Assembly: GCA_964036045.1 (NCBI GenBank)
Contig: OZ038378.1
Coordinates: 35,712,001 to 35,776,000, forward strand
Source: Eutreptiella sp. 'Long Island Sound 2002'
Lineage: Eukaryota; Protista; Euglenida
Length of the DNA: 64,000 nt
Direction: 5' to 3'
Each line of letters starts with the position of its first letter. Position 1 is the first letter of the stretch. A model generated the notes under the pieces. It searched no databases. It was given only the letters and a program-made list of their open reading frames with translations, and was not told the origin of the DNA. A program made the position numbers and the translations under genes. Below, one piece after another: positions 8,345 to 58,940 of the stretch.

Positions 8345-8489
8345 CTGAGCTTCACAAGACCCTCAACACACAGGCCCATGAGGAACACGCCGCAGCAACC
8401 GAGGGCGAACTTGGGGACGGTATCCAGCACCCATTGCGGGAACAGCAAGGCGACACAGGGATCTCCTGGGTCTCCCACTGACTGGAAGC
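8345..8489 (-). CDS. CTR: Ctr/COPT copper transporter copy 1, TM1 exon
   Basis: Acceptor cccacag|GC TTC CAG. Translates (G)FQSVGDPGDPCVALLFPQWVLDTVPKFALGCCGVFLMGLCVEGLVKL(R), a typical Ctr TM1 region. Donor CTCAG|gtcctg. Phase matches the next exon. Confidence 0.85.
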
Positions 8490-27602: not shown

Positions 27603-27889
27603 CTACGACTCGGCGTGGCTGCTGCAGCTCTGCACATTCAAGTCCTCCGGATGCTCCACCAAGGTCTTGCCGCTGTTGCTTCTCGTGATGCCATTGCTGT
27701 AATTGTCCGAAAGCGGCGGAGCCCCAGAGCAGCCCCGCTCGGAGCAGTGCCCGCTGGGCTCGACCTGGCGGTTGGGGCTGCCAGGGCTGGCGTCCTCGAC
27801 CAAGCCAGGGTCTTGGCCCGCACAGCACGCGTCGGCCGACTCCAACACAGGGCCGTTTAAGTTGAACAGGGCATGCCCCAAGACCAGGC
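27603..27889 (-). CDS. CTR: Ctr/COPT copy 2, last exon
   Basis: Duplicate of 1905-2191. Confidence 0.88.
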
Positions 27890-31857: not shown

Positions 31858-32021
31858 CTGTGATCACCATGAGGAACAGCTCCACTTCGTATGTCATGGC
31901 GATCAGCATCAGGAAGTAGCCAAGCGTCAACTGCACCCCGTACAGCAGCAGCTGCATCACAGCCCAGAACAGCCATCTCCGTCTGCTGTGCGTGGGTAGG
32001 CGCTCTTGGTTGATCCAACGC
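31858..32021 (-). CDS. CTR: Ctr/COPT copy 2, TM2-TM3 exon
   Basis: Duplicate of 6160-6323 (MLIAM motif). Confidence 0.92.
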
Positions 32022-34042
32022 CTAAAGTGAGGCGGACTGGGTACGTGGCCGCAACAGTCACCGCCGGTGGACGGGGTAAAGGAGATGGAGGGGCGCAAGC
32101 ACGGGGTGGCAGGCGGACGGCAGCAATGTGCTTGAGGGGAAAGGGGCCCAAACGGGGGCAGGGTATCCTAAATAGGGTACCCCAAAAACGGTATTCAGGA
32201 TTGGTTGCAAAGGCGGTGACCGGCGGTTGGTAAAGCGGCTGAGAGGCAATGTCTGGCGGGTACCAACCGGTTGGAGGGCCGTTGGGGGCGGACAGAAGCG
32301 GTTGGCCAGGATGACCGTTAGGGGGGACCCCCTCCTGTTCAAGCACAAACTTGCTGGACGGACTGAAGGGCCCAAACCCTACCGCTTTCGAGTCACAACA
32401 ACGCATGGAGCAGTGCATGGAGAGCCATGGCCTGTCCGCCAGGTGCCACCAAGTGCGAAGCTTCCTCTCCGCCTGAGTGCTGCCAAGCGCCACGCGATGC
32501 CACATGACAACATACTTCCAAGGGAAGTTGCAAGCTTGACTGCAGATGCACCCAGGAGATCGATGGGTCTGCACCCCGTGCTCGCCCACATCCCGGATAC
32601 CCAGAATACAGAGCCTGGAGGAGGTCTGCCCGGCCAAATACACTCGTAGTCATGGAGGCGTGGTTGCCAAAATGCTTTGTCTTTGTGTGAGTTGTACCTC
32701 CTCCCTGTAAAAGCCACTACCTGTGCAATGTAAGGCCTACAGATCACCTGGTGTGGACGTCCTCCAGTGTGTGACACCATCCCCCCCTCAGACAAGAGGG
32801 AGATATAACCACCAGGATCGATGGTACTGATGTTGTGACCGACTTTGGGCTTTGCGTGGGGCTCCATGCTCCCGCGTTGACTGCTTGTTTTAGCTTGGAA
32901 ATCCTCCCCTGAGCAGCACACCTCTTTTGGGTTTCAACGACAAATTTCTCTGGCCTATTGCGTTCGTTTCTGTCCTCTGGCCCCCATTTTCATCCCCGTT
33001 GTGCCCCAACCTGTGTTTGCTTGGTTGCATTCGCTTCATGCTCTCTTCTGCTTGGGAATGCCCTTGGTCTCTTCCCGGGCATGGTGCGGTGATGCAGTCC
33101 ATGGGTCCCCTAAATCTGCCATCTGTTGCCGGGGTGTCATGTCGTTTGTTTTTTTGGTGCACACTTCCTGCCATTGTTTGGTCTCTGTGGTTGCTTTGGG
33201 AATAGAGGGAGCTTCTATGCCCCCTAGGAGTTTCTTTTCCCCCCCCCACTGTACAATGGGACGGTTTTCCTGCTAGTCAGTCATTGGGTTGTTTTTTCAA
33301 TTTTGTTGACGCTCCTCTTTGAACGGACAGGTGGTCATTTCTCAGGGGGTCATTGGCTGCCCCAAGAACGGGGAGACAGCCCACAGCTGGTCACACTGTG
33401 GTGGCTTGCAATTTGGGCCCACTAGGGGGGGAGGGGGGCTCAATTCCTGGTTTAATCCCGAGCAGTTGCAATTCACACAAATGGGGGGGGGGTGTTCACC
33501 AGAAGCGAAAATAAACGACAGAAGTCAGACTGTGCCCAGACCTGCCACTAGCGCCCACCAGGTTCCTTACTGCGTTCTGCGTGTGACTGGGGCAGGTAAT
33601 ACTGACTTGTGTGCGACATAGGGCTGACTTCCCGCTGACTTCCCGCGAAACTCAGTGGCACTGCTGGGAACAAGTGGCAAATCTGATTGTGCCCCTCTGG
33701 AATCACACCGGGCATCTCTCACAGTGCATTGTGATGAATGCCATGAATATGGCGCAGGATCGTCCAGCATTGTCCAGCTGCAGTCGATGATTGGAGTGAA
33801 TGGGTAATCAAGAGCATGCATGGGGTACTCCTCCTCATTGGCTTAGGTTGCAGGGTCTGGAAGGTCATGAGGGTCTGGAGGGGGCTGGGGGGGAGGGGCA
33901 CCGGTCCTACACGTAGATGTCCCCCATGCCTCCGCCCCTCGCTGCATCCCAGCGGCACATCTCCCTGCAGCCCACCCCATCGGCCCAGCAGAATGCTGCA
34001 CTGGACCGGGCGCACAGCGCAACGACTGCAGGCACACAGGAC

Positions 34043-34187
34043 CTGAGCTTCACAAGACCCTCAACACACAGGCCCATGAGGAACACGCCGCAGCAACCGA
34101 GGGCGAACTTGGGGACGGTATCCAGCACCCATTGCGGGAACAGCAAGGCGACACAGGGATCTCCTGGGTCTCCCACTGACTGGAAGC
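34043..34187 (-). CDS. CTR: Ctr/COPT copy 2, TM1 exon
   Basis: Duplicate of 8345-8489. Confidence 0.85.
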
Positions 34188-36224
34188 CTGTGGGCGCATG
34201 GAACAGAGATGCGATTGGTCAGGACGCTGTTGGGCAGCGCATGGGGCAGTGCATGGAACGGCCATGGCCCATGGGACAAGGTTGTGGGGCAAACACATGT
34301 CTGCAAGGAATTGAAAAAAAACTACATTGCAAAATAGATAAATTGCAAAATAAACTGCATACACGCTGCATACATGCTGCCTAAACATTCACTACACACT
34401 GCATATGCACTGCATTATACTGCTTGGAATTCTTCTCACCCAAATGGACTTGTCATAAAGACAGTCATGTTGAGAGCACAGATTTTGAGGGGCCTCCCCC
34501 TGGTTCTCCCTCTCCTTCCCTGTCAACCGGCCAGCTCCTGGGACAGGTTTACCATGGCCACATTGGTTGGTGTGCGGTGCGGTGTGTAGTGTGACGTGCT
34601 TTGCCAGGAGTAGGGGTGGCGGGCAGGGGCCACCAGGTGCGAAGCTGCCTCTGTGTCCGAATGCAGCCAAGTTCCACGCAATTGGCGTACTAGTGTTGCC
34701 TGGTGGAGTGCATTTTTTTTCTAAGTTGTAGCTTGTGCACCACCACCAGGTGGTATGGAGGGAGGGGGAGAGGGAGGAAGGGGAGGGGCACATGACACAA
34801 TTTTGGCCATGTGGGCGGCACAATCTCCTAGAAATCTATGCCCACAGCCCATTGTGCAAACGGGGGGGGGGGCAGGCAGGGGTTGGCTTTCCGAGATCGG
34901 ATGCAATGCACCATTGGTAGAGACTTCAAAGCGGGGGTATGGGGGACTAGGGGGACTGGGTTTAGGTTGAGGTGTGGCCGTACAATATTGGCATACCCCT
35001 GTGGGCGTACCCGGGAGCTCTCCTCTGATGGATACCCAAGGATTTCTGTGGTCTCCCGCATCGTGATCATCATCCGTCAGATCGTTGTGCCGCATCGGGT
35101 TGGCGATGATGAGCGGACACTACGCAACTTGTCCTTGGTGTCGCGGATCTGGTTGCTAGGGGCACCTGCGCCCCATTCGGTTGTCACCTCATGTTGCGGG
35201 GGGGGGGGGGGGGGCTTTGGGTAGCCCCGGCAGTCCCCTAGCTGGGGTTTTACTGTACTCCTACGGCGCACTTGACGGGGGGCACACGCCGAGGGGCAGA
35301 CGGTGGGCAGGCCCGTGTGAATAAGGCAGGATGCGTGGGAGGAGGTACAAAGTGTTGTGCGCTATGCTGCTTAGAAGGGGTAGGGGGCAAGGGGCTGACC
35401 GGTAGCGTTGCGGAGTGGTGTGCAAAGTGCTTTGCCAAGGTTCACAGGGCAGGGTTAGGACAAGGAGTAACATTAGGGTACACGGTGAGTAGACCCGTGC
35501 TCCTTAGATCCCCCGTAAGCTGACAAGTCCCGTTGTGGTGCGAGGTGCTGTGCGATGTGCTTTGCCATGAGTTTGAATGGGAGGCAAGGACAAGGAGGAA
35601 CCAGCAGGTGGACGGTGAGCAGCCCTGTGCTCCTTAGCTGCCCACGAGGGCTGGCATGTCAGGTTGCAGTGTGAGCAGTTGTGCGCTGTGCTCTGCTAGG
35701 GGATGAAATAGAGGGCAAGGACAAGGAGCATCCACTGGGTAGACGGTGAGCAGACCCCTGCTCCGTAATCGCCCCGGGGGCAATAGGGTGCCAGGAAGGG
35801 TCAAACGGCGGATGAGAGTAGGGATCCGGCCAGGGAAACTTATTAAAGAGTAACATTATATCACTTTCTTTATTCTTTTGAAGCATTAAGTAGATTTTTC
35901 AACTACACTAGGGTAATAACCCTAGCCCCCCATGAAGTTCACCCCTACCACTCAATGGAGCGGAGTTCTCTTCCTTCATGGAGGTATACACCGACAATGA
36001 AATACGGTAGCCGCTTCATGCCTTTTTCTATAAAGGTTAAGCGTAGTGGTCTCCTACCTCAGGACCTATAAATGTGTTTCATATTTCGACTTTTCCGAAA
36101 AGCAGTTGGGAAATGGTGTCTACTTAGCCATTCCCGGCCATCTGTGTGACCACGCCGAGGGACGAGCCACGCCTTGATATCTGGCGGGCCTTGAGCATTT
36201 GACTTCAGTATCGTGGTTTGCACC

Positions 36225-40369: not shown

Positions 40370-41600
40370 GTGCAACCCATGTTGACAAAAAAAAGTGCGC
40401 TACCACCTGCTCTTTGTTTTGGCCTCATGATATATATTGCCCACCTGGTACCCTATGATTGGCCCTTACAACAAGGCTTGTCACTCAAAAGACAAACGAG
40501 AACAAGCGTGCGACAACGCAACTCTCATCACAAAACAGAGCAGAACAAAAAAAGAACAGGGTGCGGCCAAGCACCGTTTGATCAAACAATGTGTTGAACG
40601 TTGGGTTTTAGGGGTATTTGGTAAAACTTAGTACCGCTCGAGGTAAAACTTAGTAAATTTTGACAAAATTTAGCAGAAATCTCGTAAACAAAATTTCAAA
40701 AAGAGGTTTCAACAAAAAAAGGTGTTCAATAAGTTTTACCTCGTTTCTACTAAGTTTTACCATACCCCCCCCCCAAGAAATATGTTATGAAGGAATCGGA
40801 CACTTCGATGGTAGGTGGTACTTTTGTCTAAGGGTACAAAGCCTCTAGATTGATCACCAGCCACTTGTGTTAGTGGTGGCCCACCCGGGCCCAAGCATCA
40901 TGCACACCAATTGGTTGGCAGGAATCCAATGTAATGTAATACAATTGCGATTGGACACTAGACACAAAATGAGGCTCAAGAAAACAACGCTAATCTAGCC
41001 ATGCCCAACATCAATGTAGCAGCTCTCGGAACAAAACCGGGTTGTCGCTCAAAAGGCAAACGAGAAAAATGTGCTATAACACATCTCTCATCACAAGACA
41101 GAGCACAACAGAAAAAGGGTGCCACCAAGCACCGTTTGATCAAAAAATGTGTTGAACATCGAGTTGTAGGGGCATTTGGTAAAACTTAGTACCGCACGAG
41201 GTGAAACTTCGTAAAATTTGACAACATTTAGGAGAAACTTCGTGAACAAAATTTCAAAATTTTATTCAACAACAAAATTTTGTTTACGAAGTTTACCTCG
41301 TTTCTACCAAGTTTTACCATACCCCCCCCCAAAAAAATGTCATTATTAAGGAACTGGACACTTCGATGGTAAGTGGTACTTTTGTTCAAGGGCACAAAGC
41401 CTCTGGTTGATTCCCAGCCACTTGTGTTAGTGGTGGCCCACCCAGGCCCAAGCATCATGCACACCAATTGGTTGGCACCAATCCAATATAAGGCAATACA
41501 ATTGGGATTGGACACTACAAACAAACTGAGGCTCAAGAAAACAACCTTGATCGGGCCATGGCCAACATCAGTAGAGCGGTTCTCGGAACAAAACCGAGTG
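40370..41600 (+). repeat. Diverged ~560-bp tandem duplication; each unit holds a ~160-bp foldback MITE-like segment
   Basis: 40483 onward resembles 41046 onward. The GGGGTAT..GGTAAAACTTAGTA..CGAGGTAAAACTT inverted pair occurs at ~40612-40775 and ~41170-41330. Confidence 0.75.
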
Positions 41601-42589
41601 TAATAAAAAAAAGAGAACCCGGAGTACCTCGCATGCCATCACCAGCGTTAGTGCCAACTACTGAGAACTAGTTGCAAAAGACACACTTCAAGATCAAGTT
41701 GGCCTTAGTATCTTGAGGGCCCGGTTTGCTTGCCTCTGTGGGATTCATTGTGCACATCCCAAAGATAATTTGTTTGTGCCACTTACCTGACGTCCGATGT
41801 GACTGATATAGTTCTGGTCCGTGCCCAACATGTTACTGTGCTGGAAAATGTCTTTCGAATTCGGCAACTCTGGAGATTGCAATGGTTAGATCATATGGGT
41901 TTTGACGAGTTCATCAATCTTCGCCAATAAGTGCAACATTTGTAGCCCTGCTCATGTCTTGTCAGGTATTGCATGCTACCTAGGGCAAGCACACAGAGGG
42001 TATGGGACGAGCAAAAGCCAGCGAGAGCGCGCAACGAGCTTCCAAAGTGACTCCCACTAGTCCACAATATGCCAGGGCCTGCAAGCAGGGCTGGTGTTCG
42101 TAGGCGTTGGCTCCTCCGCCTAATTAGGGCCTTGCTTGGCTTGGGCCAACCTCTCTTCGATGCATAGCATGGCGCGGCCGCCCTTGTCACACACACGTAC
42201 AAAAGTGAACATGTACATACTCCTACGTTTCCTAAGAACCCATGCCCCACCATCGAATGGAGCCACAAAGTTGGCTACCATTTCATGTGGCTCCCACACA
42301 CACCAAGTTGTTTGGTTGCTTGGTCTGCACACGCCACCTCCGTGTCCCACACCTTTATGATCTGCAAGGTAGTTCGGAAGTGGTCAGCAAGTAGTCGGTA
42401 TGTGGTCATGAATGGGAGACCAACTTTTGTTCCATGGTGATTTCGAGGAAACAAAGACACGGCCGTCCACTATTTTTGTTGTCGAGGTGGCATGTGATGC
42501 TTGTTTTGCTATTTCAAGGGAAGGGGGGGGGGGGACTCAACTTTGTTTTGGGGGGGAGCTTCCTGCTACTTCCTTCCGAGGGACACCAC

Positions 42590-43350
42590 ACATGACTTGA
42601 AATCATGTCTCCATGGGCAATGGTGATATGTATGATCGTCCTTAAGGTGTAGGACATCATTCAAGCGTGTGAAACCATGTCTCTGGTGGCAACGGTGAAG
42701 TGTAACATGGTCTACAAGATACAAGATGCCACCGTAGCCCATCAAAACCATGTCTCCATGGGCAGCAGTGATATGGATCGTCGTCCCAAAGGTTTAGGAC
42801 ATCATTGCAGCCCGTGAGCCCATGTCTCAAAAGGCAGCGGTGATATGTATCATCATCTACAATGTGTACGATATCACCGCAGCCCTGCAAACCATGTGTC
42901 CATCGGGAGCAGAGATATGTACGATCATCTATAAGGTGCGGGACATCACCGCAGCCCTGAACTCATGTCTCCATCGGTAGCGGTGATACGTATGATTATC
43001 TACTAGATGCCAGGTACCACGGCAACGTCTGAAACCACGTCTTCACCGGCAACGGTGATATGTACCATGGTCTACAAGGTGTAGGATATCACCACATCCC
43101 CTCAAACCATGTTCCCATTTGCAACGGCGAGATGTGACATGGGGTACAAGGTGTGGGATATCACCACAGGCGGAAACCATATCTCCATGGGCAGCAGTGA
43201 TATGCATCATGGTCTACAAGGTGCACAACATCACTGCACCCCCTTAAACCGTGTCTCAATGGATAGCGGTGATATGCAACATGGTCTACATGGTATAGGA
43301 TATCAGTGCTACCTGTAAAAGCAACTGTCCATGGGCAGCGGTGATATGTA
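42590..43350 (-). repeat. ~72-bp minisatellite, ~11 copies, encoding a 24-aa Cys/His repeat
   Basis: AAACCATGT-like anchors at ~42601, 42672, 42744, 42816, 42888, 42960, 43032, 43104, 43173, 43245 and 43317. Minus-strand consensus is about YHRCPWRHGxxGCxDVxHLVDHxT. Confidence 0.88.
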
Positions 43351-44045
43351 ACATCATGTCCCTTCACCTCCCTTGCCTCCCTAGCTGCCATCCCCCGCCG
43401 AAGCCGTGCATCCTCACACCCCAACAACCCTACCTCCCACAACTGTGCCCATTTACTGGGCTTGTGGGGCCTCCAGGAGCCCCACAGCTCCGAGCACTGG
43501 TGGCCGTGCTCCCACTCTTTCAAGCCGCGGAGCACGGCCAACCCAAGCGCGGGGTCTCGGGCGAGGAGCTTGTGGAGCCCGCCCAACCCCGCGCTGCGCT
43601 CCCCGTCCTTGTCGCTCCGAACGACACCGACGGTGCGAACATCGTGCCCGCAGACCACCACGTCCTTCACCTGCAACAAAACAGGCGGAGGCCATGGTCC
43701 GGGGGACAGATTAAATTTTTCGGACCACTGTTTTAAATTTTTTGGTTTACTTTTTAAGGTTCATTTTTAACTTTTGAAGCGCCGATCGAAAATTTAAATC
43801 TTAAACCAAAACTTTTAAACGGAGCGTCCAAAAAATTAAAGAAACGCAAACACGTATACACACACACACCTTCCGAAATTCTGGGCACCCCATGCATGCG
43901 GCACCCCCATCGCCTTCCAAAAGCCGGAGGCCGGGCTTGGGGCCTCTGCGGGGACGGCGGCATTGCTTTTGACGGCGATGGCGGCCGCCGGGGGTGCCGT
44001 CCGAGTGACGGCGGCCAACCCGCGGGTCGTCTGCGACCCAGGCAC
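43161..44045 (-). pseudogene. Spliced downstream coding segment (intron 43671-43904) running into the 72-bp repeats
   Basis: Phase-0 join FWKAMG|VKDVVVCGHDVRTVG. Donor GTGCCG, acceptor TTGTTGCAG. The intron is AT-rich like the one at 45848-46009. Confidence 0.55.
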
Positions 44046-44777: not shown

Positions 44778-46062
44778 TCAATCAACGCCTCCATTGCGGC
44801 GGGGTCCATGGATAGGGCTTACAAGAGCTAGGGGTGCAAAGGAAAGGGACATGGGTAGGGGGCCATGGTTACACATGAGCTTGGCCATTGTACACGGGGC
44901 CACATGGGGAGTTCCTAGGGTCCCTAGGGGTAGATCAAATTTCACAAACCACCATTCCCATACTTGCAAAACTACCTCCGCCTCCCTTTCTACGGATGTG
45001 GCCCCCGGCATCCCCCCCCCGCCGGCCGTGTGATCGTTGTAGGCCCGTTCTAAAATAGCATCCAGGCTTTCGACCACATCCGCACACCCCCCCCCCCGTC
45101 CCCACGCCCAAACGTGCCGCATTAGCCACCGCCGTGGTCGCATTCTCCTCCAGGTACAGGAGGTAGTTGGACTGGCAGACGGCCTTGCAACAATGTGCTT
45201 GGTACTGCCGCGCGACAGCAGACGCCCCCAGGTCATTGAGAGGGGGCGTGTCGCTGTACAAGTCTCGAAGTAGATCCCTCATGGCAACAACAGCTTGCCA
45301 TTCGGGGTCCTCCGGTGCGTAGGCCAATAGTGGGCCCATCTCCTCCCAAGCAAAGAAGAGGGCCCTGGCCTGCTCCCCATCGGGTGCAGCGGTGGCACCC
45401 AGCTTCAACCCTGTGTGCCAGGTACAACAACCGTTGCACGGCCTCGGCATTCTCCTTGGGGAGTGACTCCAGGCGCGCCTCAACCAAAGCGACCTGAAGC
45501 CGGCCAATGGCCATGCAACAATAGAGGATGCATCGGAACACCCAACACCGGTCAACCACGATGTGAGGTTCCGCTATACACCCCCCATTATCCAAGCTCC
45601 GACCCGTCACCTCATATTGGTGACGCGCGGCCGCCTCATTGTCCAAAGTCCGGCGCACGTCCACCAGCAACCACGCCGCCGCCGCCTTGTCCCACACCCT
45701 TATATTGTAAATAGACCCCACTTGGGGTGATGCGGACACCCCAATGAGGCGGTGAATAAACGGCTGGTCAGCCCCAAGGACTAGCGCAGCAGGCACCCAA
45801 CAGGATGCCCAGCAGAAACTTTTGCAGTCATGAATCGAGTGCCACACCTACAAAAGAGTGTGTGCATTGATATCCGGGAATCACTTCTTCGTTTTAATCT
45901 TAGCTTCAAATTTCGTTCGGCTTAAATTTTAAGCAATTTTTCGCTTTTAAATGAGGAACTTTGAAACGAAGCGAACCCAAATTCAATGCGACACAAAAGC
46001 GCCAAGTACCTTAAGATTCTCGGCCCAAATGGTGGCCAACGCGGCCATGTCTTTATCGCCGC
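44778..46062 (-). pseudogene. RAG1/Transib-like DDE transposase, 3' part, with intron 45848-46009
   Basis: CGDKDMAALATIWAENLK|VWHS..., LVLGADQPFIHRLIG, RRTLDNEAAARHQYE, GCIAEPHI, ILYCCMAIG, DGEQARALF, NYLLYLEE and CADVVESLDAILERAYNDH are colinear with the RAG1 core around D708 to E962. Frameshifted. Confidence 0.72.
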
Positions 46063-46877
46063 ACACCGCCCAGGATTGTGTATAAAGTCTGATGTCTGAT
46101 GTCTGATAAGGGGTGTTGTGTGTGCGGTCTGTCCAAGAAGATGTCTGATATTCTTGTCTATTGGAAGTGGGTCTAGGGGTCTAATGTCTAGAGGAAATTG
46201 GGAGAAACTATCCCTAAATCACCCCCCCCCCCTTGCCGTTGTCCACACCAAATTCTTCACAAGAACCCCCCCCCCTTGACCCACCCATCCCCCCCCCCCC
46301 CACTATCAAGTGCCTTCCACCCCCCCCCAAGGAAAAAAGGCGCCACAAAAAACAGAACACACAAACCCCCCCCCGTTTGGAAAACAATTGCACACCTGTT
46401 GTTGACAGCAGACAGCATCTGTGACAATCAGAAACATGGCAACACAAAAATAAAAACCACCTTGAGCACCACAACGGGGCAATGGGGAAAATGGGTGAGC
46501 AGCAAAAGTGGCCAAGGAAAAATACACTTTGGGAAAGGGAAAGGGGAAAGGGGAAAGGGGAAAGGGGAAAGGGGAAAGGAGAAAATGTGGGAGCAGGATA
46601 AGTGGGAAAATTGAACGACCACCACACAAAACGGCCATACATAGCACTGAAAACCCAATGGGTAACGTGGGGGAAATGTGCCAAACAGGGAAAGGGGCAG
46701 AAATCTCAACGGATAGCATCCTGACCATGGCAATTGGCATCAGTTAAATTCGGATCCACACATAAAATGGTCATGGTACACCATAGAACACCAAATGTTG
46801 CAACACGGAAAATGGGCAAAATCTTCAAAGAGAGCGCACAACAACAAAAAGGCACATGCAAATACGTGGGCATCCTC

Positions 46878-49800
46878 TCATTCATCGATGAGTCCATCCA
46901 TGTCATCCACTGGCTGCGAGCAACTGGGCTGGGAGCTGCTTGGTGGTGCCGCAGAACGCGTGACACGGTCCGTGGCTGGCACAAACGCATTCCATTCTTC
47001 CAACAATGGCAATGCGTGCTGCGTAGCAAGGTCCTGCAGTTCCCGCCGAGTGTTGTTACTTGCCACCTTCACACCAAGCACATCAAGACAATGCACCAAC
47101 GCCACCCTCGTCCAATCACGCACCCTGCCATTCTGCACTGCCATTGCCAACTTCGCCTGCATCCTAGCCACACTGCGCCCCTTATTTGGCTTGCGCGTTG
47201 TGGCCAATTCGTCTGCACTATTAGTATCCCCCTCATCATAGACATCACCTACAACATTCATCACCACCTCCCCACAAGGACGCGGGCTTGCGCAAAAGCA
47301 TGCATGACACACTAGACATGTATTGCACCAGATGCGAACCTCCTTCTTGCATGTGGCACACTCCATACCTCTGCGAAAAGCGATGAAGTCGTGGTTGCCA
47401 GCATGCGAGTCAGGCGTCCCATCTGGTGCCACAGTGCGTACCACATCAGCCTGGTGCCGTTCTGTACCCTTTCCTGAGGGGGCCGTGGATGCTAGTGGTG
47501 TACCCGGCCCTCCAAAGAAGGGCAGGTTGTCACCATCATCAGCCAGTGCTTCATTACCTTGTAGACACTGCAGCATCGCAGCTTCCAGAGATTCTCTTTC
47601 ACTTACCTTCCTTGAAACCCTCTGTCTTGGGTGCAGATCGAAGCGTGCACGGGCAGGCAAGTGGCGTGCCACTGCAACACCTTGTCCCTTTGTCCATTGC
47701 TGTAAAGGGGGCAAGTTGGAATGCAATGCCATGCACATGCTGAGGACATGTGTCTCCACAATGTCATGCATATTGCTGCAGAACCTCCCACGCAAAGAGA
47801 TGGCACGCTCTACTGCAGCTTCAGCGGGGCAATACGTTCGCAATAATGCGAGAACGCGCCACACATTGACCCACTGTGCATGTGCCCTTTCGGGTGCCAA
47901 TGCCTCCCACATCTTGGACGTTTGCACAGTTGCAAAGTGCTGCACCATGTGCTCCTTAAGGTCTGCCCACTCTACCAAGGCACGGTCACAGCTCACATGT
48001 GCCGCGCACAACTCTTCCTGGTGTGCAGCCATAAACTGACGCAACTGCTCTACCCCATATGCAGCACGCTCATTGACCGGGAGGCCAAGGAAACGGCCAT
48101 GGTCCAACAATACTGCGCACTCCAACACCCCCCTGGGGTCAATGGTTGCTTGCCCCTCCTTGATGCCTGCAAGCAACGCATCAGTTACTGCACGCGCCTG
48201 AACGCCAGGAAAAGGAGGGGTTGTTACACACTTCTGCCCACCTGAATCAAACTGCACCAACTGCACACCATGCCATGCACCGGTCGCAGTTTGCTCCTTG
48301 AACTGCAACAACCCTCGACCCTCCTCGCAAGCCACCTTCTGCAACCGGGCTTGCAGCATACCTGTGGCAGTGGCTAAGTGTGCACCTGTGGGCGCGCGCA
48401 GTTGTGCCACACTGTTAAAACACCGCATGCCATGCAAGATGTCCCCATAAACCACCCCCCATGCAAGCAAACTGGCATCATGGCAGTCCTCCCACACATC
48501 CTCCTCCTTGGTAGAGTGCTGCACCTTGGAATCCAAGTGTCGTGCCACCCAGGGGACATTGGCCAAAAAAGCAGTGTTGCGCCGTGCATTTGCTTGTGAC
48601 CACCTGATGCGATGACTTGTGGGGATCAGTTGCAAGCCACTACGGTTATCCTGCACATGCTTCTGCACACACTTTTGCAACTCCTTCCACTGCCGTGCCC
48701 CACTGTACAAGCCTCGCTGCCGATCGACGGCCGCCATGTAATCAACATGGGTCGCGCCGGCAGCCTCCAGCGCAAGACCCAACTTGCGCTGTAACACATG
48801 GCACGGCTCACCCAAGGGTGTCATCAACACCAACCACTTCCCAATCAAGGCAAACACATTGCTCTCAATAACAGAGACATCAACAACCTGCCGCGCACTG
48901 GCACCCCGCACACCAAGGTTGGAAGCCCTGTCCACTGCAAAGGTCACTACCCTCTTTGCCCACCAATCGCGGTCAGGAATCTAGGAAAGCAGAACGCATT
49001 CCAACTGTGTTGCAATCTCATGCGCATCACCACAGGCCACATCCACCACTCCAAGGAACACCTCACACATGCCCCCATGGCCAGTCCCCGGGAAAATAAG
49101 CAGAATGGCGTACTCATTGACGCGATGCCTCTGCCTATCCGAGCCATCAAGCAACAGTGCAATGAACGGTGTCAGGAATAAGGTGTGCGTCACCTCATCC
49201 TGCATGGCATCATGCATTGCTGCAATAGCCTTCTCAACTATCCACCGCCGTGATGCATGGTGCCCAGGGGCAGATGTCAGAGAACAGTGCAGAAGAATGC
49301 GCTCACTTATAGCACGGACGGAAGTGCACATGCGTAACCCAATATACACCTCAACCAACCGTGACAGAATGGCTGCCTCAGCATCCGACATAGCCACACC
49401 AATGTCCATGGCTTCCCCCCTGACGAACACAACGGTCGCTCCCACCACCACAGCTGTGGCAGCAGCAGTGGGGCACAATGCGCGATACCGCTCTGCACAA
49501 TGCAGCTTGAAACTGTCCTCAGCCAATCGGTGGTGGTGCACTCGCCTATGCAGATTCTTTCGGTTTGATGTTGTGCCACGTGATAACCCCAAGTGGCTTT
49601 CCAACACCTCCTTCCGCCACGTTTTTGGGCCGGAGGTCTTCATGCGCATCCCTACAGCATATGTTCCCAATACCAGGGCTTCACTTTTCTTAGGGGGACG
49701 CGCCACCCCAGGAATGCCACACACATTTGCCCACGCACAACACACACACTCAACACCCCCACTTGTCGTGAACTGATACTGCCAATGGGCGGCTACAAAC

Positions 49801-50363
49801 ATTTGTAGTGTCTTTGGACCACTGTCCAGTTGCATGGGAGTGGCCTGCATCAACACGCACAATGCGTCCTTCCCCGATGCGGCCAATGCAACAGACCTCA
49901 ACCTGTCTTGCTCGACTAATTGTGCCACGGAGGATTGTGACATGCCATGCTCTGCATGCCGCGCATCCCACTCTTTTGCATGCCGTGCTCTCAGTTGCAT
50001 CTGGTGTGCTTCAACACGCACTCTCAGATGCCTTGCCACTCGCACCTTGCGCTTCTGCAGCAACTGTGCCACTGCATCAACAAATTCTGAGGACGTCTGT
50101 AGCGGCGCCGAGGCAGCCACACACATCTCATTGGGCATGCTCTGAGCATGCATACTCATGTCCCCTACCTTTGAAGCACTCTGTGTTGCAATTGGGGAAG
50201 GGGGGGATGCGCCTTGTGCCAGCGCCATGGCTGGCATAGAGGCGTCCATAGGCACGCTCTGGGCATGCATAGGCCTGTTCCTGATGTACCCCACCCTTGA
50301 TGCACCCTGTGTTGAAGGAGGGGTGGGGAGGGACTCACCTGGTGCCAGCGCCATGGCTGGCAC
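46878..50363 (-). pseudogene. hAT (ZNF862-like) transposase, ~1160 codons, one in-frame TAG at 48981-48983
   Basis: ALLLDGSD (D1), FLGVVDV, FAVDRASN (D2) and YCPAEAAVERAIS (catalytic Glu, dimerisation region). ORFs 48981-50363 and 46878-48947 share a frame (LLS*IPDRDWW). Confidence 0.88.
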
Positions 50364-50389
50364 CGAGGTGTCAGTAGGTACGCTCCGGG

Positions 50390-50535
50390 TACACCCCTTC
50401 CGTCAAATATTTGGGGGCTGTAGACCCCCCAAATATTTGACGGAACCCCTTCCGTCAAATATTTGGGGGCTGTACACCCACCAAATATTTGACGGAACCC
50501 CTTCCGTCAAATATTTTGGGGGTGTACACCCCCCA
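50390..50535. repeat. 52-bp palindromic tandem array; partial second copy at 50921-51000
   Basis: The unit has a 20-bp stem, TTCCGTCAAATATTTGGGGG / CCCCCAAATATTTGACGGAA, around an ~8-nt loop. Units start at 50394, 50446 and 50498. Confidence 0.92.
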
Positions 50536-51290
50536 AATTGTCATGTATTGTCATGTATCGTTGTTGAACGGCAATTATCGTTGGCGTGTCTTCAACCTCC
50601 TTTTTGGGCATCCCCACCCTGAAGACCTTGGAGACCGCCTTCAATCTTGGGCAGTCAGGCATGGGCACATTCGTACCATTGCGGACAAACATAATGAACG
50701 CACAGTGCAGCAAACCTAGTGGTGATCACATGTGTGTACTCTTTCCCACATCTCATTAGGCATGCTCTGGGCATGCGTACTCATGTCCCCTACCCTTGAA
50801 GCACTCTGTGTTGCAGTTGGGGAAGGGGGGGGTGCGCCTTGTGCCAGCGCCATGGCTGGCACAGAGGCGTCCATAGGCACGCTCTGGGCATGCATAGGCC
50901 TGTTCCTGATGTACCCCACCATTTTGGGGGTGTAGACCCCCCAAATATTTGACGGAACCCCTTCCGTGGAATAGTTTGGGGCTGTAGACACCCGAAATTG
51001 TCATGTATTGTCCTGTATCGTTGTTGAACGGCAATTATCGTTGGCGTGTCTTCAACCTCCTTTTTGGGCATCCCCACCCTGAAGACCTTGGAGACCTCCT
51101 TCAATCTTGGACAATCAGGCATTGGCACATTCGTACCGCAGCGGACAAACATAATGAACGCACAGTGCAGCAAACCTGGTGGTGATCACATGTGTGTACT
51201 CTTTCCCGCTGGTGCTGTGGCTGGTACTGGTGTGATGTGGCAGGGATGGTCAGAGGCCATGGGTCAATGCATGTTCTTCTACATACAGGG

Positions 51291-54200
51291 TTAGTGGCGG
51301 CCCAAAATGTAATCTTTCACCCCGTGGGGCAGCTTGCGCCACCCACATTGGGGGGCTTCCTCCTCGTGCACCGGAATTGGTGCACACACCCCAAGGGCCC
51401 CAGGGCAAGGGTGCACACCATGGAGCAGGGAAGCCACGTACACACCAATAGGGGTGCGGAATTCCGCACGCAAGAACGGCAGGGAATCCAAGCAGGCGTA
51501 CGCGTCTTGCCACAAGGGCAGGTGGATCGTGCGGTACGCCCCTACTGTCTCCTTGTTGCTGTACTTTTGCTTCCAGAAGAGGGGCCTTCCCACCAGGTGC
51601 TGGACGAGTCGCTGCTCCCACACGTCAAGCTTGGATGTGTGGGTTACCCTCACCAGCCCCCCCCCGTCCCCCTCTCCCCTGTCCCCTTGTCCATCGTCCT
51701 CAACCAAGACGTACGGGAGCGCCCATTCGGTGAAGTCAGGCAGGATGACCCCCAGAAGGCGGGGTTTCACAATGTTCCCCCGTGCATCCCTCAGACAAAC
51801 AGACACCTCATCCTTCCGATTGTTGGCCATGATGCGCTCAAAGTCAAGCAACTGATCCGCACTGCCTGGTTGATACCCCCATGGGTCCCGTGCCCTCTTG
51901 TGCCTCCTCCATGGCTTCCACAGCCAGTGCCCCACCACCCCCCCAGCCAACCGGTAGATTGTGCCATGCACAATCTTCTCCACAGTTGCGGCCTCCCTCA
52001 GAACCCGTGCCAGCTCAAGAGTGTCGCTCACAGTCCTAGAGGCTGCTTCCCACTGCATCGCGTGCAGTGCCTCGAGCCATACACCAGGGGTGGGGTGGGT
52101 GGTCCACCGTGCAAAGTGCCCGAAGAGGTGCAGCTCCGACTGCGCCCTGCTGGTCATGGTGTTTGACCGCCAGATGTCGTGCATGATCCCTGGTGTCTTG
52201 GACACCAGGGAGGCAAGGATCACTGGGGCTTGCAGCCCCTGCAACCTATCGAGGGTCGCAACCGTGCTGAGGAGGTTTACATGATGGGTCTGCCACTTGC
52301 GGCCAACAGACGCCACGCAGTGTTTCATCCACACCATCTGTGCGTAGTGAGTCGTCACTACCGCTACCGACTGTGCTGGGTAGGTCCCTTTCCTGGCAGC
52401 ATACTCCAAAAAATGGCACACCAGCAAACCCTCCTCCATGCTCAGGCCCCCCTTGTTCAGCAACACCGGGTCCATTCGCAGCGTGGCCCATGCTTCCTGT
52501 ACGTCTTGCCACATTCTACCTAGGTCCTGTGCCCCCAAAGTCTGCTCCAACTCCCCCCACCAAGTGGACCTAGCGAGGTCCACAATGCGGATGGGGTTGT
52601 TCAGGATGGGGTCGGGGAGGGGGTGCTCAGATGAGTGGTAGTGGCCAACTGCCCCCCCCGTAAACAAGGCACGCATGACCGTGGCCAGCGGCTGGGTCAT
52701 CCGGTACTATTGTACCAGGATACTGGCCCGGCAGCGCGTGCGGTACAAAAAGAATTGCAAGGTGCTGGTGGTGCAAAACCGATGCGAATCATGCCAATGC
52801 ACTTCCGGGCCAGGACCGTCCATTACAACCCTGTTGAACTTGAAGGTGTCCGCCCGTGGCCATGCCACTCTGTGGGGGACTACGTCAAGCCCCTCAGCCT
52901 CACACCAACTTGCCAAAAGCTGGACGTGGCTGTAGGGCCGCAACTGCCTGGGTCACCACACAGCTGACATTGGCTGCCCATGGCGGCCAAGTCCAGGCCT
53001 ACAGGGATGCTGTGCCTCGACGCCTCATCCACGAAGCTGAACGTGAACCTGGTTTTTTCCTGCCCTTTCCCAAGCAGCATCTTGTGCCGGTTAGCAACCA
53101 TCCCAGCCGTGGCAAACAGAACACGGCAGGAGTTGAGGGCACATTTGAGGGTAGGCTGGCAACCTGGGGTCTTGCCCAAGGTCTTCTGCACCTCCTCCTG
53201 GTCGAAGGGTGCCAGGCCTGTTGGGGCAGTAGCCCGTTGGGCTCGGAGGCGCAACCAGGGGGCTGGGTGCTCGCCAAGCACCTTCTCACGAAACACACTG
53301 TCCTTGTAACACTCCTCGTGAACGCGTGCCAACAACATGTCGACTTGTGCGTTCGTGGGTGCAGTCACCAACACGCATGCGCGGGGTTGGGTATCTGACT
53401 CAGGTCCCCCCACCTTCCTGCCCATGTTCCACGTACTCCGGTCAGCAGGTTCAGGGTTCTGGGCGACCAGGAGGCCTTGCTGCCATAGCACGGCCTTGAT
53501 GCATGCCACCAAAGTCTCCGACTTCCCTGTGCCAGCACCACCAGTCAATGCCGTGATGCATGACTCATCCAACACCTGCCGCACAGCCAACGCCTGTGAG
53601 GGATTCAGCCCGTGCTGTTAGACAAGGTGTTTCAGGATGTCCTGGTCCTCGGTCGAAAGGGGAGGCGTGTCCCTCGGTTCGGCCCGCATGTTTGCCAGCA
53701 GTTGGGGCCACGCTTCTCCGTCCTGGATCTCCCTACGCAAGGTCTGAAAGGCACCTGTGTCGGGGACAACCTTACACCAATAGGTGTCAGCGAGATTGGT
53801 GTGTGGCTTATTGGCACAGCTGATCCAAACACGCTGTCCTGAGATGCCATCTCCATGCACCCTCGCCTCGAAGTCCGGCTTGTTTTTATCCCAGTGGTGG
53901 TTGCTGCAGATCAGTCACGCACCATGTCACCATCGGACAGCTCATAGTTGCCCCAGACCTCCATTTGGGAGGCCCATTGTGGCGGTGGGGGAGCATTCCC
54001 ATCCCCATCGCCATCACCGTGGGGCCACCATTCCTCAAAAGCCAGGCGCCGCTTGGTGCCGTTCTTGTCTGCCCACACCTCAGCGGCCGCCATCTCATGG
54101 ACGGTGTACACCTCTGATTCTTTGGTCACGAACTTGTCGCGGTCAAGCCACCGTTGCGTAAACCCTTCGACAAGGTTGTCATCGGGCCCGTAGTCCATGT

Positions 54201-56069
54201 TGTTCAACGTGGCCGTAGTGGGCAACAGTGTTGGCTGCTGTGGCTGAGCAGCACATGGTGGTTGTGAAGAGGGTTGAGCTCCTTGTGGCGCACCCGAGTC
54301 GGCCGGCGCCATGGCCGGGACAGGGGCGGATTGCTGCGGCTCGGGGGCACGCATTGCTGGTGCAGAGGGTTGGGTACCCTGTGGCGCGCCCGAGTCAGCC
54401 GGCGCCATGGCCGGGACAGGGGCGGATTGGTGCGGCTCGGGGGCACGCATTGCTGGTGCAGAGGGTCGGGCACCCTGTGGCGCGCCCGAGTCCACCGGCG
54501 CCATGGCCGGGACAGGGGCGGATTGCTGCGGCTCAGGGGCGCGCAATGATGGTGCAGAGGGTTGGGCACCCTGTGGCGCGCCCCAGTCCACCGGCGCCAT
54601 GGCCGGGACAGGGGCGGATTGCTGCGGCTCAGGGGCACGCAATGATGGTGGTTGTGCCGAGGGTTGCGGTGGGATCATGACGAAATCCACACCCCCGGGT
54701 GGCGGCTGGGACGGTGCCTGTGGGGGGGCAGAGGGTCGCGCGCCCCTGTCAGCCGGCGCGAGGGCCGGGTCAGGGGCGGAGTGCAGCGCCTCTGGGGCGC
54801 GCGGTTGAGGTGCCATTGCCTTTGGGGGGGCAGAGTGCGGCGCGCCCCTGTCAGCCGGCGCCAGGGCCGGGACAGGGGCAGACTGTGGCGCCTCTGGGGC
54901 GCCCGGTTGAGTTGCCGGTGCCCTTTGGGGGGCACAGTGCGGCGCGCCCCTGTCAGCCGGCGCGCGGGCCGGGACAGGGGCGGAGGCGCGCGCCTCTGGG
55001 GCGTGCGATGGTGATGGTGATGGTGATGGTGGTGGTGCTGTTGCCTTCGGCTTCGGCTTTGCACCATACTTGGTCTTGGCAAGCCATTTTGGAGCCATTT
55101 GGAAGAGTGCCCTACGAGTAAGAGACGCTCGGCGCACACTGCCCGAAGAGCTGGAAATTCGAACGTCTCGCCGAAGTCTGGGGTCGCTGCAAGGGGGCTT
55201 GCGCAGGGAGCAATGACCCAAATTGCGGGGGGGGCGGACTGAGACGCACGCCGCTGGAGCAATGAACCGTACTGCGGGGTGGGGCATGGCCGCTTTGGGG
55301 CGGGAGCCAGTGGGAGGAGTGAGGTACGGCGGTGCCTGCTATATTGGGTCAGCGTCACCTGATCACTTGGTGGAGGGGGCAGCGGCCGACGCGGCACAGG
55401 TGGCGGGGCTGGCTTGGGGATACGGGGGGGTTTTGGGGTGGCACACAGGATTTCAAGTACCACTGCTGCATGCTCCTCGTCCCTGCTGAGGAAATGCGAA
55501 CGACTAATTCGCATGCCCTCCTGCCACACACGCAGGGGGTTTTTCTTGGGCTGCTGCACAGCAAACCGGTACATCGCTCGGCGGTTCAGCACCCCGTCTA
55601 CGAAGTACTGGACCCCACCCCCGTGATTCTCCCGGATGAGTTGCAGTGTTTTGGCACTGTAGGGCCCGTGTACAGTGGGCTTTGGGGGGGTGGGCGGGTC
55701 CTTGGGTACGTACTTGGGGGGTTGCGGGGGGGATGGCGGTGGCACGGCAGTGCACATCAGGGCCTCCTCCACGGCTTCCAGGGCTACCAGGTATGGGGTT
55801 GGGTTAATGTGGGGTCTGCGTGGAGGACTTACGGGCATTGGAGAGGTTGTTGGTGCACGGCAGGGTGAAGGGGGAGAGGGAGGCGGTGTTGGCAATGGAG
55901 GCTGGGGGGAGGCCAGTTCGCTAAGCACTTCTCAGCATCAGAGTCCCACGGTGGTGATGGGGGTTGGTCTCCAAACCGCAAGAGCTCCGGCAGATCCCCC
56001 CAACCGCATTCCGGGAACGAAGGGCTGGAGGGGGCGGAAGAGGCCACACTAAGGGGGCTAGACGACATG
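51291..56069 (-). pseudogene. Large intronless Upf1/DNA2/NAM7-like superfamily-1 helicase ORF, decayed
   Basis: LNPSQALAV, Walker A GGAGTGKS, Ia VLVTAPTNAQVD, II FVDEAS, III CGDP-QLRP, Q*YRM, VAVVTTHYAQ, V TLDRLQGLQAPVILASLV and VI RSNTMTSRAQSELHLFG. Several stops and frameshifts. Long Pro/Ala repeat N-terminus. Confidence 0.88.
54200..55000 (-). repeat. Coding tandem repeats in the helicase N-terminus (~28-aa units, QSAPVPAMAPADSGAPQG..APEP)
   Basis: About 7 GC-rich units inside ORF 53911-55287. Confidence 0.9.
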
Positions 56070-56349
56070 GCAAAGTGCAGCCCGCAGTGGGTGGGGGATG
56101 AACGCATGGGTGCTGGGGCAGGCCCAACTCAAATGTTTGGGTCAGAGACGCAACGGTCTAGACCCTAGACGCGCTTCCTCGCCTCAAGGGTCAAGGGTCG
56201 ATAACAAAAGAGTGCCCTATGTGTAGAAGAGGCTCAGCGCACACTTGTCTCCTAGGCAATACACGCATTTCCCTATGTGTCGAGAGAGACATGCACAACA
56301 AGGAACAGATAAGCGTTGAAGGGACATAGGTACCAGGAGCATGTGACAT

Positions 56350-57965
56350 GGGACCCCTTCTCAGTAGCGGGCAGCATGTTCATCATTGAAGGGGTCTATG
56401 GTCATAGGCGCCATGGCCTAGACCACAGACGTACTAAACACCTCAAGGGTGTTGTGCATGATCCACCAAATAAAGTAAAATCAAGTGCGATAAAACCAAA
56501 ACATACCATGAAATCCCAACCACATTAAATCAATGGACCAGCAGTACCCACATAGCAGAGCCCCTTCTCAGTTTTTTTTTTTGGCTGACAGTGGGAATTC
56601 TGCATCACCCAACTCGAATGCAGTCCGTCACATTGGACAGTACTGCGCCCAGCAAGGCAGAATGAAAAAGAAACCTTGGGGCCGGAATCTGCGCAATGAC
56701 CCAGACAAGCTGTCAAGGTAGGGGCTGGCGTATGTTGTGCAGCACAAGGGTGCAGTAGGGCTGATTGCAGTGGTCTTTGGCAAGTTTGGCAAACATGCAG
56801 ATCCGTTGGAGTATGGGGAGATGCCTGGCTCCATCCAACAAAATAGGGCCTATGACAGTAGGCCCTGGACAGATTGTTCCCACATGGCTGACACATCATC
56901 GAAGGGGATGCATACGTGGAAACATGGAAGCAAATACCACGAAATCAGAACCCCTTCTCAGTTGTCGTCAGCAAATTCCTCATCGAAGGGGTCTGTGGTC
57001 GTAGGCGCCAGGGCCTAGACCATGGACATACCAAACACCTCGATGGGTGTTTTTCAGGAACAAACAGCACACGTTCAAATACACCGTCAAAAGAAATGCA
57101 ATGCGACACGTGGCACCAAAGTTGCAAATGTTCACGACTTACACCATAACACACCTCTGAGAATTGTAGTCTGTGGGTAATCTGTAGTCTGTGATTTTTT
57201 CCATGTTTTTCCACTACACACAGAACCAACAGAACATCGAACATCACAGACACACACCATTTGATGCTGACACTGAAAGAGGCAAGGCAGGCTTTTCCAC
57301 ACCATTGCGCATGGGGTTGCGTGGGGGGTGTTTTCCCTACACTGTGGATTTCTCTGCATGGTTTTCCAAACTTCCTCAAGAAACACCACGGCAAGACGGA
57401 GGACGACAAGACAGAGCACAGGGGTTTTAATGGTCGTCACCAGATCCTGCAATGAACAACAAAGCGTGAGCAGGGCATAGTGCACCACATTGCAATGAGC
57501 CTTCGGGGCTGGGACAGAGGGGCGGTTTAAAACAAGGAAGTCAAATTCGAAATCACTGCAAAGCCCCTTCTCAGATGTAGGTTGCTTGGTTTTCAAAATG
57601 GTTGCTGGCCATTGGAGGACATGGTGCACATTCTGGTGGACATGGTACACTGACTGCTGGGGGCAGTCCCATTCCTCGGCCGCAAATCCGCAAAGCTCCG
57701 TCCGCACAAAACAGGTCCTAAGAAATAGGTCCCTGCGGGGGTCGACACTGAAGACCCACGCGTGACGGAGCAGCACATGTAAATTGTCATGCATCGTCAT
57801 TGAAGGGGCTCACAGTCAGAAAATTGTAATTGGTTGCAGGAGCAAACGTGCCAGAACCCCTTCTCAGTTGTGATCAACGCGTTCATCATTGAAGGGGTCT
57901 CTGGTCTAAGGCGCAAAGGCCTAGACCACAAACAATCAAAAACACCTCAAGGGCGTTGTACACAA
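56350..57965 (+). repeat. Three dispersed ~130-bp direct repeats in the hAT 5' non-coding region
   Basis: CCCCTTCTCAGT..CATC(A/G)T(T/C)GAAGGGGTCT..GGCCTAGACCA..AAACACCTC at ~56354, ~56950 and ~57858. Confidence 0.75.
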
Positions 57966-58313
57966 ACAAATTGTCTGCTCAAACAACCAAAATCAGAATC
58001 AAATTGAAGTTGTCACATACATTGTCAACAACAGGTGTGCAATTGGTTTCCAAACGGGGGGTTTGTTTTTTCCGTGGCACCTTTTTTCCTCGGGGGGGGG
58101 GGGGGGGTTGAAAGCACCCGATAGTGGGGGGGGGGGTCACGGGGGGGGGTTTCCTGCGAAGACTTTGGTGTGGACAAGGGCGGGGGGGGGGGGGGTTGAT
58201 GTTGTGCATAATCAAGGGGTCGGGGGAGGGGGGTTCATGGTCTGGTAATGATGGTCCATAAAAGTCTGATGTCTGATGTCTGATAGCCGACTAAGTCGCT
58301 ATACACAATCCTG

Positions 58314-58940
58314 ACACCGCCATCTCAATGACCCACAAATAGGCGAGTGCGCGGCCCCGTTTGCCGTGGTTGAGGAGCCCAATAGACAATTGGGTCCAAC
58401 CCTGAGCCGCACATGGGTAGGCATCCCCGCGCACAATAAACGTGAGGGGCCGGTCCCAATTAATGGTGTCCACTCTTGGTGGACGCGATTGAATGTAGCG
58501 GGCCCATGATTGCACAGGCCAACTGCGGCCACTAGCGGGTGGGTCGTCCACTTGCACGGGGGGCCGGAACTCTAGCGGCTTAGCCATATCCTTCCACGTG
58601 TCCGAGAAGGCTTGCCACGTTGGGATGGGTCGCGGGAAAGTGTGGCCCGTAGCGGCCGTATAGTCAATTCCTCGCCGTGTCATGAACTCGAAGAGGTGGC
58701 GGAACCCCGTCTTCGTGACATTGAGATCCATGAGGAGCCCAATAAACTTGGTCGCGGGAAAAAGGGAGGAGGTGTATTGTTTCACCGCCTCCACTTGCTT
58801 AGTACGAATAAGGGAGGGGTAGCCAACGTCCGTGGCCTCCGGCCATCGGGCCCAGGCCAAGGGAGATGCAGCCACTCACTCACCAAGGAGTTGGGAGAAC
58901 AAAGGGTCCCGCAAACTCTTGGCTCCACTGAAACGTCATG
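58314..58940 (-). pseudogene. RAG1/Transib-like DDE transposase, 5' part
   Basis: FIGLLMDLNVTKTGFRHLFEF, PLTFIVRGDAYP (first catalytic Asp) and TQLSIGLLN...LWVIEMAV. Joins in frame to 46062 once the hAT and one TSD copy are removed. Confidence 0.72.

Follow-up and report, generated by a model that had tools for sequence, protein, structure and literature searches.

The genome of the euglenid Eutreptiella sp. 'Long Island Sound 2002' contains, at positions 46071-58313 of the 64,000-nucleotide stretch of contig OZ038378.1 analyzed here (positions 35,712,001 to 35,776,000 of the contig, in the following termed the window), an element that in all likelihood is a dead, internally deleted copy of an abundant and recently active giant DNA transposon. 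The element carries a gene for a transposase with a DDE (aspartate-aspartate-glutamate) catalytic center, probably of the hAT type, and, upstream of it and in the same orientation, a gene for a helicase of the Upf1/Sen1 type from superfamily 1B (SF1B). Judging from the comparison of sequences across the 2.28-Gb assembly, the helicase gene appears to be a stable, co-diverging accessory gene of the whole lineage and not the passenger of one copy, because it occupies a fixed position, is paired with the transposase gene, is present in intact frames and recurs in a sister subfamily. The features of the element are the following:

46063-46070, no strand: left copy of the 8-bp target site duplication (TSD), ACACCGCC, identical to 58314-58321
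46071-46084, plus strand: left 14-bp terminal inverted repeat (TIR), CAGGATTGTGTATA, the perfect reverse complement of 58300-58313
46087-46107, plus strand: three tandem GTCTGAT heptamers, repeated at 58264-58284 in the same (direct) orientation; candidate transposase-binding repeats
46214-46407, no strand: left subterminal inverted repeat with abundant C runs, complementary to 58023-58194 at 76-86%
46878-50389, minus strand: transposase pseudogene (divergent DDE, probably hAT-type) in a single frame, collinear with protein P0001 (1093 amino acids, aa) at 90.6% identity
50390-50392, no strand: junction of an internal deletion, where the homology of other copies breaks and extra DNA is inserted in them relative to the window
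50393-50538, no strand: 52-bp palindromic, hairpin-forming satellite with 2.8 units (Tandem Repeats Finder, period 52, 94% matches)
50461-51207, no strand: duplicated block downstream of the helicase gene, composed of B (50461-50747), A' (50747-50923) and B' (50921-51207)
51291-55338, minus strand: Upf1/Sen1-like SF1B helicase pseudogene in three frames, with AAA_11 and AAA_12 (5' end at about 55287/55338)
54236-55020, minus strand: tandem coding repeats of 96 bp and 102 bp, the frame 0 translation of which is the proline/alanine-rich N-terminal part of the helicase
55339-58022, no strand: interval from the helicase start to the right subterminal repeat, with dispersed short repeats (D5, D8, D9) and no recognisable gene
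58023-58194, no strand: right subterminal inverted repeat with abundant G runs, complementary to 46214-46407 at 76-86%
58300-58313, minus strand: right 14-bp TIR, TATACACAATCCTG, matching the left TIR at 14/14 positions
58314-58321, no strand: right copy of the TSD, ACACCGCC

An initial annotation of the window, made from the sequence alone, had pointed out perfect 14-bp TIRs, an 8-bp TSD and subterminal inverted repeats, and all of them are indeed present, the latter with a length of about 190 bp. Searches of the assembly yielded 1401 candidates for the left end, 1463 for the right end, 930 for transposase DNA and 678 for helicase DNA; these counts are first-look candidates, and the identities of 93-99% on the DNA level refer to the listed copies. 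For eight copies besides that in the window, both ends lie on one contig and both flanks are readable. These further paired copies, retrieved by the genome search with both TIR ends that the initial annotation had recommended, are each flanked by an 8-bp TSD (perfect in six cases, 7/8 in two). The match of the TIRs is therefore not a product of chance, and since TIRs and 8-bp TSDs are found on every copy tested (9/9, the window copy included), they speak for insertion by a DDE-type cut-and-paste process. Across the family, the left TIR is nearly invariant (27 of 30 left ends are exact), and the pairing of the subterminal inverted repeats is present in all 59 other end loci. Exact matches to the double GTCTGAT heptamer number four, all of them residing at the two element ends, with a chance expectation of 0.03. 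The triple arrays are direct and not inverted, an unusual arrangement among subterminal binding sites of TIR elements. When the element is removed in silico together with one TSD copy, an open stretch of 213 aa results on the minus strand across the joined site, which fits an insertion of the element into another ORF (open reading frame). The interrupted open frame comprises 58291-58875 (minus strand) and 45986-46070; the ORFs flanking the insertion site are without match in Pfam.

The right TIR occurs in a second form. At 12 of the 29 matching right-end loci (L044 is unmatched), it ends with CATAGCTG, the full form being TATACACATAGCTG versus TATACACAATCCTG. The loci named with this variant are L036, L040, L041, L043, L045, L046, L051, L053, L055, L056 and L059. 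Because their flanks differ, with the exception of the duplicated pair L036/L055, these ends are best described as a variant lineage of the right TIR. At least one copy with the variant (C261) carries the helicase gene at the usual distance, and a left-end counterpart is not found among the 30 left ends. Loci L036 (G000:C10:19158049-19161408) and L055 (G000:C10:19258114-19261473) are 99.8% identical over all 3360 bp including the flanks, lie 100 kb apart and go back to a segmental duplication in which a copy of the element is included.

The helicase gene of the window copy is broken by frameshifts near 53915 and 52940 and by in-frame stops at 53618-53620 and 52707-52709, positions at which intact relatives have K and Q, respectively. 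The frameshift near 52940 cuts motif III, and a stop hits the start of motif IV. The broken pieces were searched separately and gave 43.5 bits for AAA_11 and 33.4 bits for AAA_12 in Pfam (cut-off 27 bits); for the intact relative P0201 the corresponding scores are 38.9 and 35.7 bits. AAA_30, which represents RecD/Pif1-like enzymes, scores 20.2 bits and stays under its cut-off. Matches among PDB sequences are restricted to the Sen1-like 5'-3' RNA helicases 8ftm (best), 8fth and 8ftk, with a similarity that is significant over the first RecA part alone (E = 1.5e-11). SF1 motifs I, Ia, II, III, IV, V and VI are all present in P0201, P0223, P0219, P0242 and P0246. The protein is accordingly classified by its domains as a predicted SF1B helicase of the Upf1/Sen1 type and not of the Pif1 type, in line with the initial annotation. 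At its C-terminus it has a conserved extension of about 270 aa without known relatives. The AlphaFold model is poor, with a pLDDT (predicted local distance difference test score) of 37. Intact helicase copies elsewhere in the genome occupy an open frame of about 1352 aa, which puts the 5' end near 55340 and not at 56069, the position proposed initially, about 0.7 kb further out. An ORF at 54675-55928 is an alternative frame overlapping the helicase.

The linkage of the two genes extends over the family. Among 40 listed transposase copies, compared with 58 listed helicase copies (both are small samples of the family), 12 are paired with a helicase copy, without exception in the same orientation and on one side, with about 0.001 pairs per copy expected by chance. 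In five copies the helicase gene lies 7.0-7.75 kb from the right end, and 26 of 29 sampled left ends run on into the 3' part of the transposase gene. About half of the 58 listed helicase matches are free of stops, and several of them are found in open frames of about 1350 aa. The initial annotation had described two long, co-oriented ORFs with the helicase upstream; order and orientation are borne out, and in this particular copy both genes are broken. Its view of the helicase as stable cargo is strengthened by the family-wide, co-oriented occurrence at a constant distance from the right end and by the same order in a sister subfamily.

This sister subfamily belongs to the same genome. P0011, its transposase, shares 65% identity with that of the window, and P0219, its helicase, 50%. 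A co-oriented helicase gene is present 1-52 kb upstream in 21 of 44 transposase copies, and in 22 of the 44 another conserved ORF, corresponding to residues 9-525 of P0043, lies 1.5 kb upstream of the transposase gene. The resulting order, as exemplified by G000:C6:97267998-97284514, is helicase (frame of about 1210 aa), a variable interval, an ORF of about 575-665 aa, 1.5 kb of spacing and the transposase, the open frames of which reach about 1640-1690 aa. Both subfamilies have retained the seven SF1 motifs and the 270-aa C-terminal extension at an overall helicase identity of 50%. P0011, P0219, P0201 and P0043 are each 100% identical to a locus in the genome, and these database 'homologues' are therefore the species' own copies. 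P0043, the extra ORF of the sister subfamily, is without match in Pfam. N-terminal to the sister transposase there are weak signals resembling USP proteases (UCH with E = 0.0048, which is below the cut-off, UCH_1 with E = 0.0081 and USP5 with E = 0.47). Since these signals are weak, we do not assert a USP or OTU identity for the extra coding sequence.

Paired copies measure 6.1, 17.1, 18.6, 18.8, 19.9, 20.6, 22.8 and 32.5 kb and thus mostly 17-23 kb, which makes the 12.2-kb window copy a short one. The 12.2-kb layout with two genes, as described in the initial annotation, does not represent the native form of the family, as complete copies include the satellite within their greater length and the sister subfamily has at least one more conserved ORF between the helicase and transposase genes. 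With the whole element as query, 26 other copies, i.e. every scored one, match 46071-50389 and then break off; with 50390-51290 as query, 39 copies match 50393-51290, contiguous with the 3' end of the helicase gene. The blocks ending at 50389 and starting at 50393 are 4.4-15 kb apart in other copies, the separation of the two blocks being 0.9 kb here, and the gap between helicase and transposase genes is 1.39 kb in the window copy versus 5.3-22 kb elsewhere. It follows from these coordinates that the middle of the window copy has been deleted at 50390-50392, right where the satellite begins. Other family copies contain 3.5-14 kb or more of DNA between the genes, with the 52-bp satellite as part of it, and many have longer satellite arrays with extra tandem units at 104-bp spacing. 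As single-stranded DNA the satellite folds at -56.4 kcal/mol (z = -13). Deletion derivatives of other kinds exist as well: 47121 is joined to 55970 in L029 and 47097 to the satellite in L024.

Within the duplicated block at 50461-51207, A' is a 95% copy of A (50122-50298), a 5' coding part of the transposase gene, and extends through '...HAQSMPNEM'. B and B' are two copies of a 287-bp block that flank A' just downstream of the helicase stop. Residues 1-49 of P0044 match both 50270 downward and 50895-50749. The same A'/B/B' layout is found in other copies of the family, and A' might have arisen by duplication of a 5' exon or of a promoter unit. On the other side of the helicase gene, the region 55339-58022 is polymorphic across copies at 56460-56920, with homology ending at 56895/56920 in about half of the right-end loci. 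The ORFs of this region have no match in Pfam, and an Rfam scan of the window returned nothing.

The transposase pseudogene has an in-frame stop at 48981-48983, which replaces a W within 'MSWIPDRDWW' of P0001, and a substitution of G by R adjoining the second catalytic D. Its reading frame remains open at the deletion junction, so that the deletion may have taken coding sequence. In the family, the transposase has a size of about 1100 aa or more. Near its C-terminus there is a cysteine-rich motif, C..C...R.WC..C..C, at residues ~925-960 of P0001 and at about 47080-47190 (minus strand) of the window, which is also kept in the 27%-identical P0148. A HMMER search of 1.84 billion representatives gave 251 matches. 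Nearly all of those listed are fragments with 44-95% identity to the query, and the only clearly distant relatives among them are P0148 (27% identity, E = 3e-26) and P0142. Neither P0148 nor P0142 has a Pfam domain. A profile word search with A2 returned P0148 itself only, and no match to the A2 profile was obtained in viral or metagenome contigs.

hAT transposases are characterized by an RNase-H-like DDE core, an insertion domain and a C-terminal dimerisation domain (PF05699); hAT elements have short TIRs of about 10-25 bp with termini fitting YARNG and a target preference of nTnnnnAn. We consider it probable that the transposase of the window belongs to this superfamily, an assignment that rests on the 8-bp TSD, the D/D/E motifs, a weak T2/A7 bias and neighbors found with a protein language model. 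The D/D/H/E motifs of the transposase are conserved in P0148 despite its 27% identity. Motifs shared by P0148 and P0142 are 'DGS/DET', 'F(A/G)VDGAS', 'H(V/L)(V/L)', 'SHRIR(W/F)' and 'E(R)' within 'CPAEAAVERAISLRG'. We take the contexts of D, D and E to be typical for hAT ('DGASN', the 'H' motif and 'ERxxSxxG' near the C-terminal region), and CPAEAAVERAISLRG, with its spacing, resembles the catalytic E region that opens the hAT dimerisation domain. The start of the TIR, CAGGA, fits four of the five YARNG positions. T is found at TSD position 2 in 19 of 60 ends (~10 expected) and A at position 7 in 17 of 60 (~9 expected), paired copies being counted twice; with these GC-rich sites as background, this is an enrichment of about twofold, and a weak one.

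Several results weigh against the interpretation put forward here. Pfam gave no match up to E 10 for the window ORFs, eight full-length relatives of the transposase and 41 family members, and the PDB sequence and profile searches returned chance-level matches only, with none to Hermes. The AlphaFold model of the transposase is poor, with a mean pLDDT of 51 and less than 50 in the catalytic region, so that the Foldseek search with it, in which no match had E <1, carries no information. The neighbors named by the protein language model are all from the hAT clan (Dimer_Tnp_hAT, DUF4371, FAM200-ZBED5; Buster/ZBED5-type), with scores of 0.78-0.80 for the window ORF and 0.87-0.90 for P0148 that fall within the range reachable by chance, and they serve as leads only. 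On the side of the helicase, intact frames in copies that are 93-99% identical may reflect their youth and not selection, and copy C24 (18.8 kb), in which right-end locus L054 joins 57626 to 50813, is without a helicase gene and nevertheless has a 7/8 TSD, from which it follows that the gene is dispensable in cis for insertion. Finally, we infer the content of the interval removed from the window copy from coordinates and from the sister subfamily.

It is thus conceivable, albeit unlikely in our opinion, that the element is not a hAT at all and belongs to another or an undescribed superfamily with 8-bp TSDs (e.g. P, Merlin, Mutator, Novosib or Zisupton/KDZ-like). The lack of any sequence-level match to hAT models or Hermes would fit, and so would the fact that the only weak matches are to the piggyBac-derived PiggyMac 6zop (the C-terminal cysteine-rich part in a PDB profile search, E = 0.19; Foldseek rank 24) and, for one transposase fragment, to an IS1595-type protein (E = 0.058). 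This is countered by the hAT-like contexts of D, D and E, by the fact that the neighbors of two members sharing 27% identity are all from the hAT clan, by the short TIR opening with CAG and by the T2/A7 target bias. The 'hAT' of the initial annotation therefore remains a probable label, favored by TSD length and motif resemblance and left without backing by Pfam and PDB. A more radical reading would turn the roles around, with the helicase as the mobilizing enzyme, in a Helitron-like or replicative manner, and the 'transposase' ORF as cargo. Helicase and satellite parts are in fact very abundant, partly as rearranged fragments. Still, perfect TIRs in the window copy, 8-bp TSDs in 9/9 copies (two of them 7/8), a helicase of the Upf1/Sen1 and not the Pif1 type, the failure to find a Rep/HUH domain and the retention of a TSD by the copy without helicase render this scenario scarcely credible.

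Equally far-fetched is a simple nested insertion, by which a separate mobile unit or a captured fragment would have landed in this one hAT copy. The helicase is found in the same position and orientation in many independent, TSD-flanked copies and in a diverged sister subfamily, and neither inverted repeats nor TSDs bracket it; in the window, no inverted repeat was found around the helicase block, just as the initial annotation had noted. That annotation had also named what would speak for nesting, namely that most family members lack the helicase and that helicase copies occur with termini of their own, and the copies examined contradict this. A private gene capture of the Pack type was rejected, as the helicase occurs family-wide at a fixed position in frames of about 1350 aa and is conserved in two subfamilies. 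There is more to be said for a host helicase that was captured once by an ancestor of the family and is now a neutral passenger, surviving through the youth of the copies. Given 93-99% identity between the listed copies, intact frames would be expected anyway, a helicase-less copy with a TSD exists (C24, L054), and the helicase of the window copy has decayed freely. However, the seven SF1 motifs, the C-terminal extension and the order and orientation of the genes are kept across subfamilies at 50% identity, a divergence over which loss or degradation would be expected for a neutral passenger, so that we regard this explanation as improbable.

Taking the element as a giant, probably hAT-type transposon with a stable helicase gene, we consider the following scenario probable. 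The family would move by cut-and-paste, with a DDE transposase, most likely of the hAT type, acting on the 14-bp TIRs and the subterminal repeats and producing 8-bp TSDs; the transposase presumably binds the TIRs and the subterminal heptamers. A complete element of about 17-23 kb would encompass, in one orientation, the helicase (frame of about 1350 aa), a variable 52-bp satellite with further sequence and the transposase. In the window copy, the deletion at about 50390 probably came first, with stops and frameshifts arising in both genes thereafter. Our best guess for the helicase is that it works as a 5'-3' motor on the structured nucleic acids of the element itself: it might unwind R-loops or the hairpin satellite while the element is transcribed or replicated, or it might clear transposition intermediates. 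A more far-reaching idea is that of a giant hAT-like lineage, so far in one protist genome, in which transposase and helicase co-evolve and the latter is obligate, being needed to deal with the hairpin satellite, R-loops or transposition intermediates; this idea is tentative, and we are rather doubtful about it.

hAT elements are usually a few kb in length and possess one transposase gene. Like Ac, hobo, Hermes and Buster, the family described here has 8-bp TSDs, a short TIR starting with CAG, short subterminal repeats, a DDE-type transposase with a C-terminal 'ER..S..G' motif and many internally deleted derivatives. It differs in that its transposase is invisible to the Pfam hAT models and to PDB sequence search, is large (about 1100 aa, with sister frames of about 1640 aa) and has a C-terminal cysteine-rich domain, and in that the element extends over 17-23 kb and carries a helicase gene and an internal satellite. 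With regard to the intact helicase copies, AAA_11, AAA_12 and all SF1B motifs are shared with Sen1/Upf1-like cellular helicases (8ftm, 8fth, 8ftk), whereas an N-terminus of proline/alanine-rich repeats, the 270-aa C-terminal extension, encodement by a transposon and about a thousand copies set it apart.

Accessory genes in hAT elements have precedent. In fungal hAT7 families, a gene for a TET/JBP dioxygenase is located upstream of the transposase gene in the same orientation and kept across related families (Kojima, 2025, PMC12730594). The parallel lies in an upstream, co-oriented accessory enzyme gene that is kept across relatives; the differences lie in the enzyme (an SF1B helicase and not a dioxygenase), a non-fungal host, a TSD of 8 bp and not 7 bp and a several-fold larger size. 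Helitrons carry Pif1-type helicases fused to Rep, and some Helentrons also OTU proteases (PMC6431247). They have in common with our element that a eukaryotic DNA transposon encodes an SF1 helicase. In Helitrons, however, the helicase is of the Pif1 type and fused to a Rep/HUH nuclease, and neither TIRs nor a TSD are present, whereas the element described here has TIRs, 8-bp TSDs, a DDE-type transposase and a separate gene for an Upf1/Sen1-type helicase; Pfam did not reveal a Rep domain in the ORFs of the element. We found no report in the literature in which an Upf1/Sen1-like helicase is carried by a hAT or any other DDE transposon. While hATs with two genes are already known, the pairing of helicase and transposase is apparently new.

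The usual picture of a cut-and-paste DNA transposon is that of an element of a few kb with a single gene. As the present family of about a thousand copies demonstrates, a DDE element, probably of the hAT type, can reach about 20 kb and retain a helicase across substantial divergence, in parallel to the retention of a dioxygenase by some fungal DNA transposons. If the helicase is needed, this would point at a step in the transposition of very large, structure-rich DDE elements that goes beyond the transposase alone, with transcription through hairpin satellites, removal of R-loops and processing of intermediates as candidates, and it would offer a natural transposase-helicase pair for testing. 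Should it even be an obligate partner, the family would constitute the first cut-and-paste DDE transposon dependent on a dedicated SF1B helicase. As the transposase escapes all standard models, routine pipelines would leave a major repeat family unclassified.

Two observations concern the window outside the element. The stretches 1-10526 and 25699-36224, each 10,526 bp in length, are 100% identical in direct orientation and lie 25.7 kb apart, which points to a segmental duplication of very recent date or else to an artefact of the assembly. Arrays of tandem repeats are located at 13344-14670, 40475-41599 and 42580-43358, with units of about 70-560 bp and identities of 68-90%.

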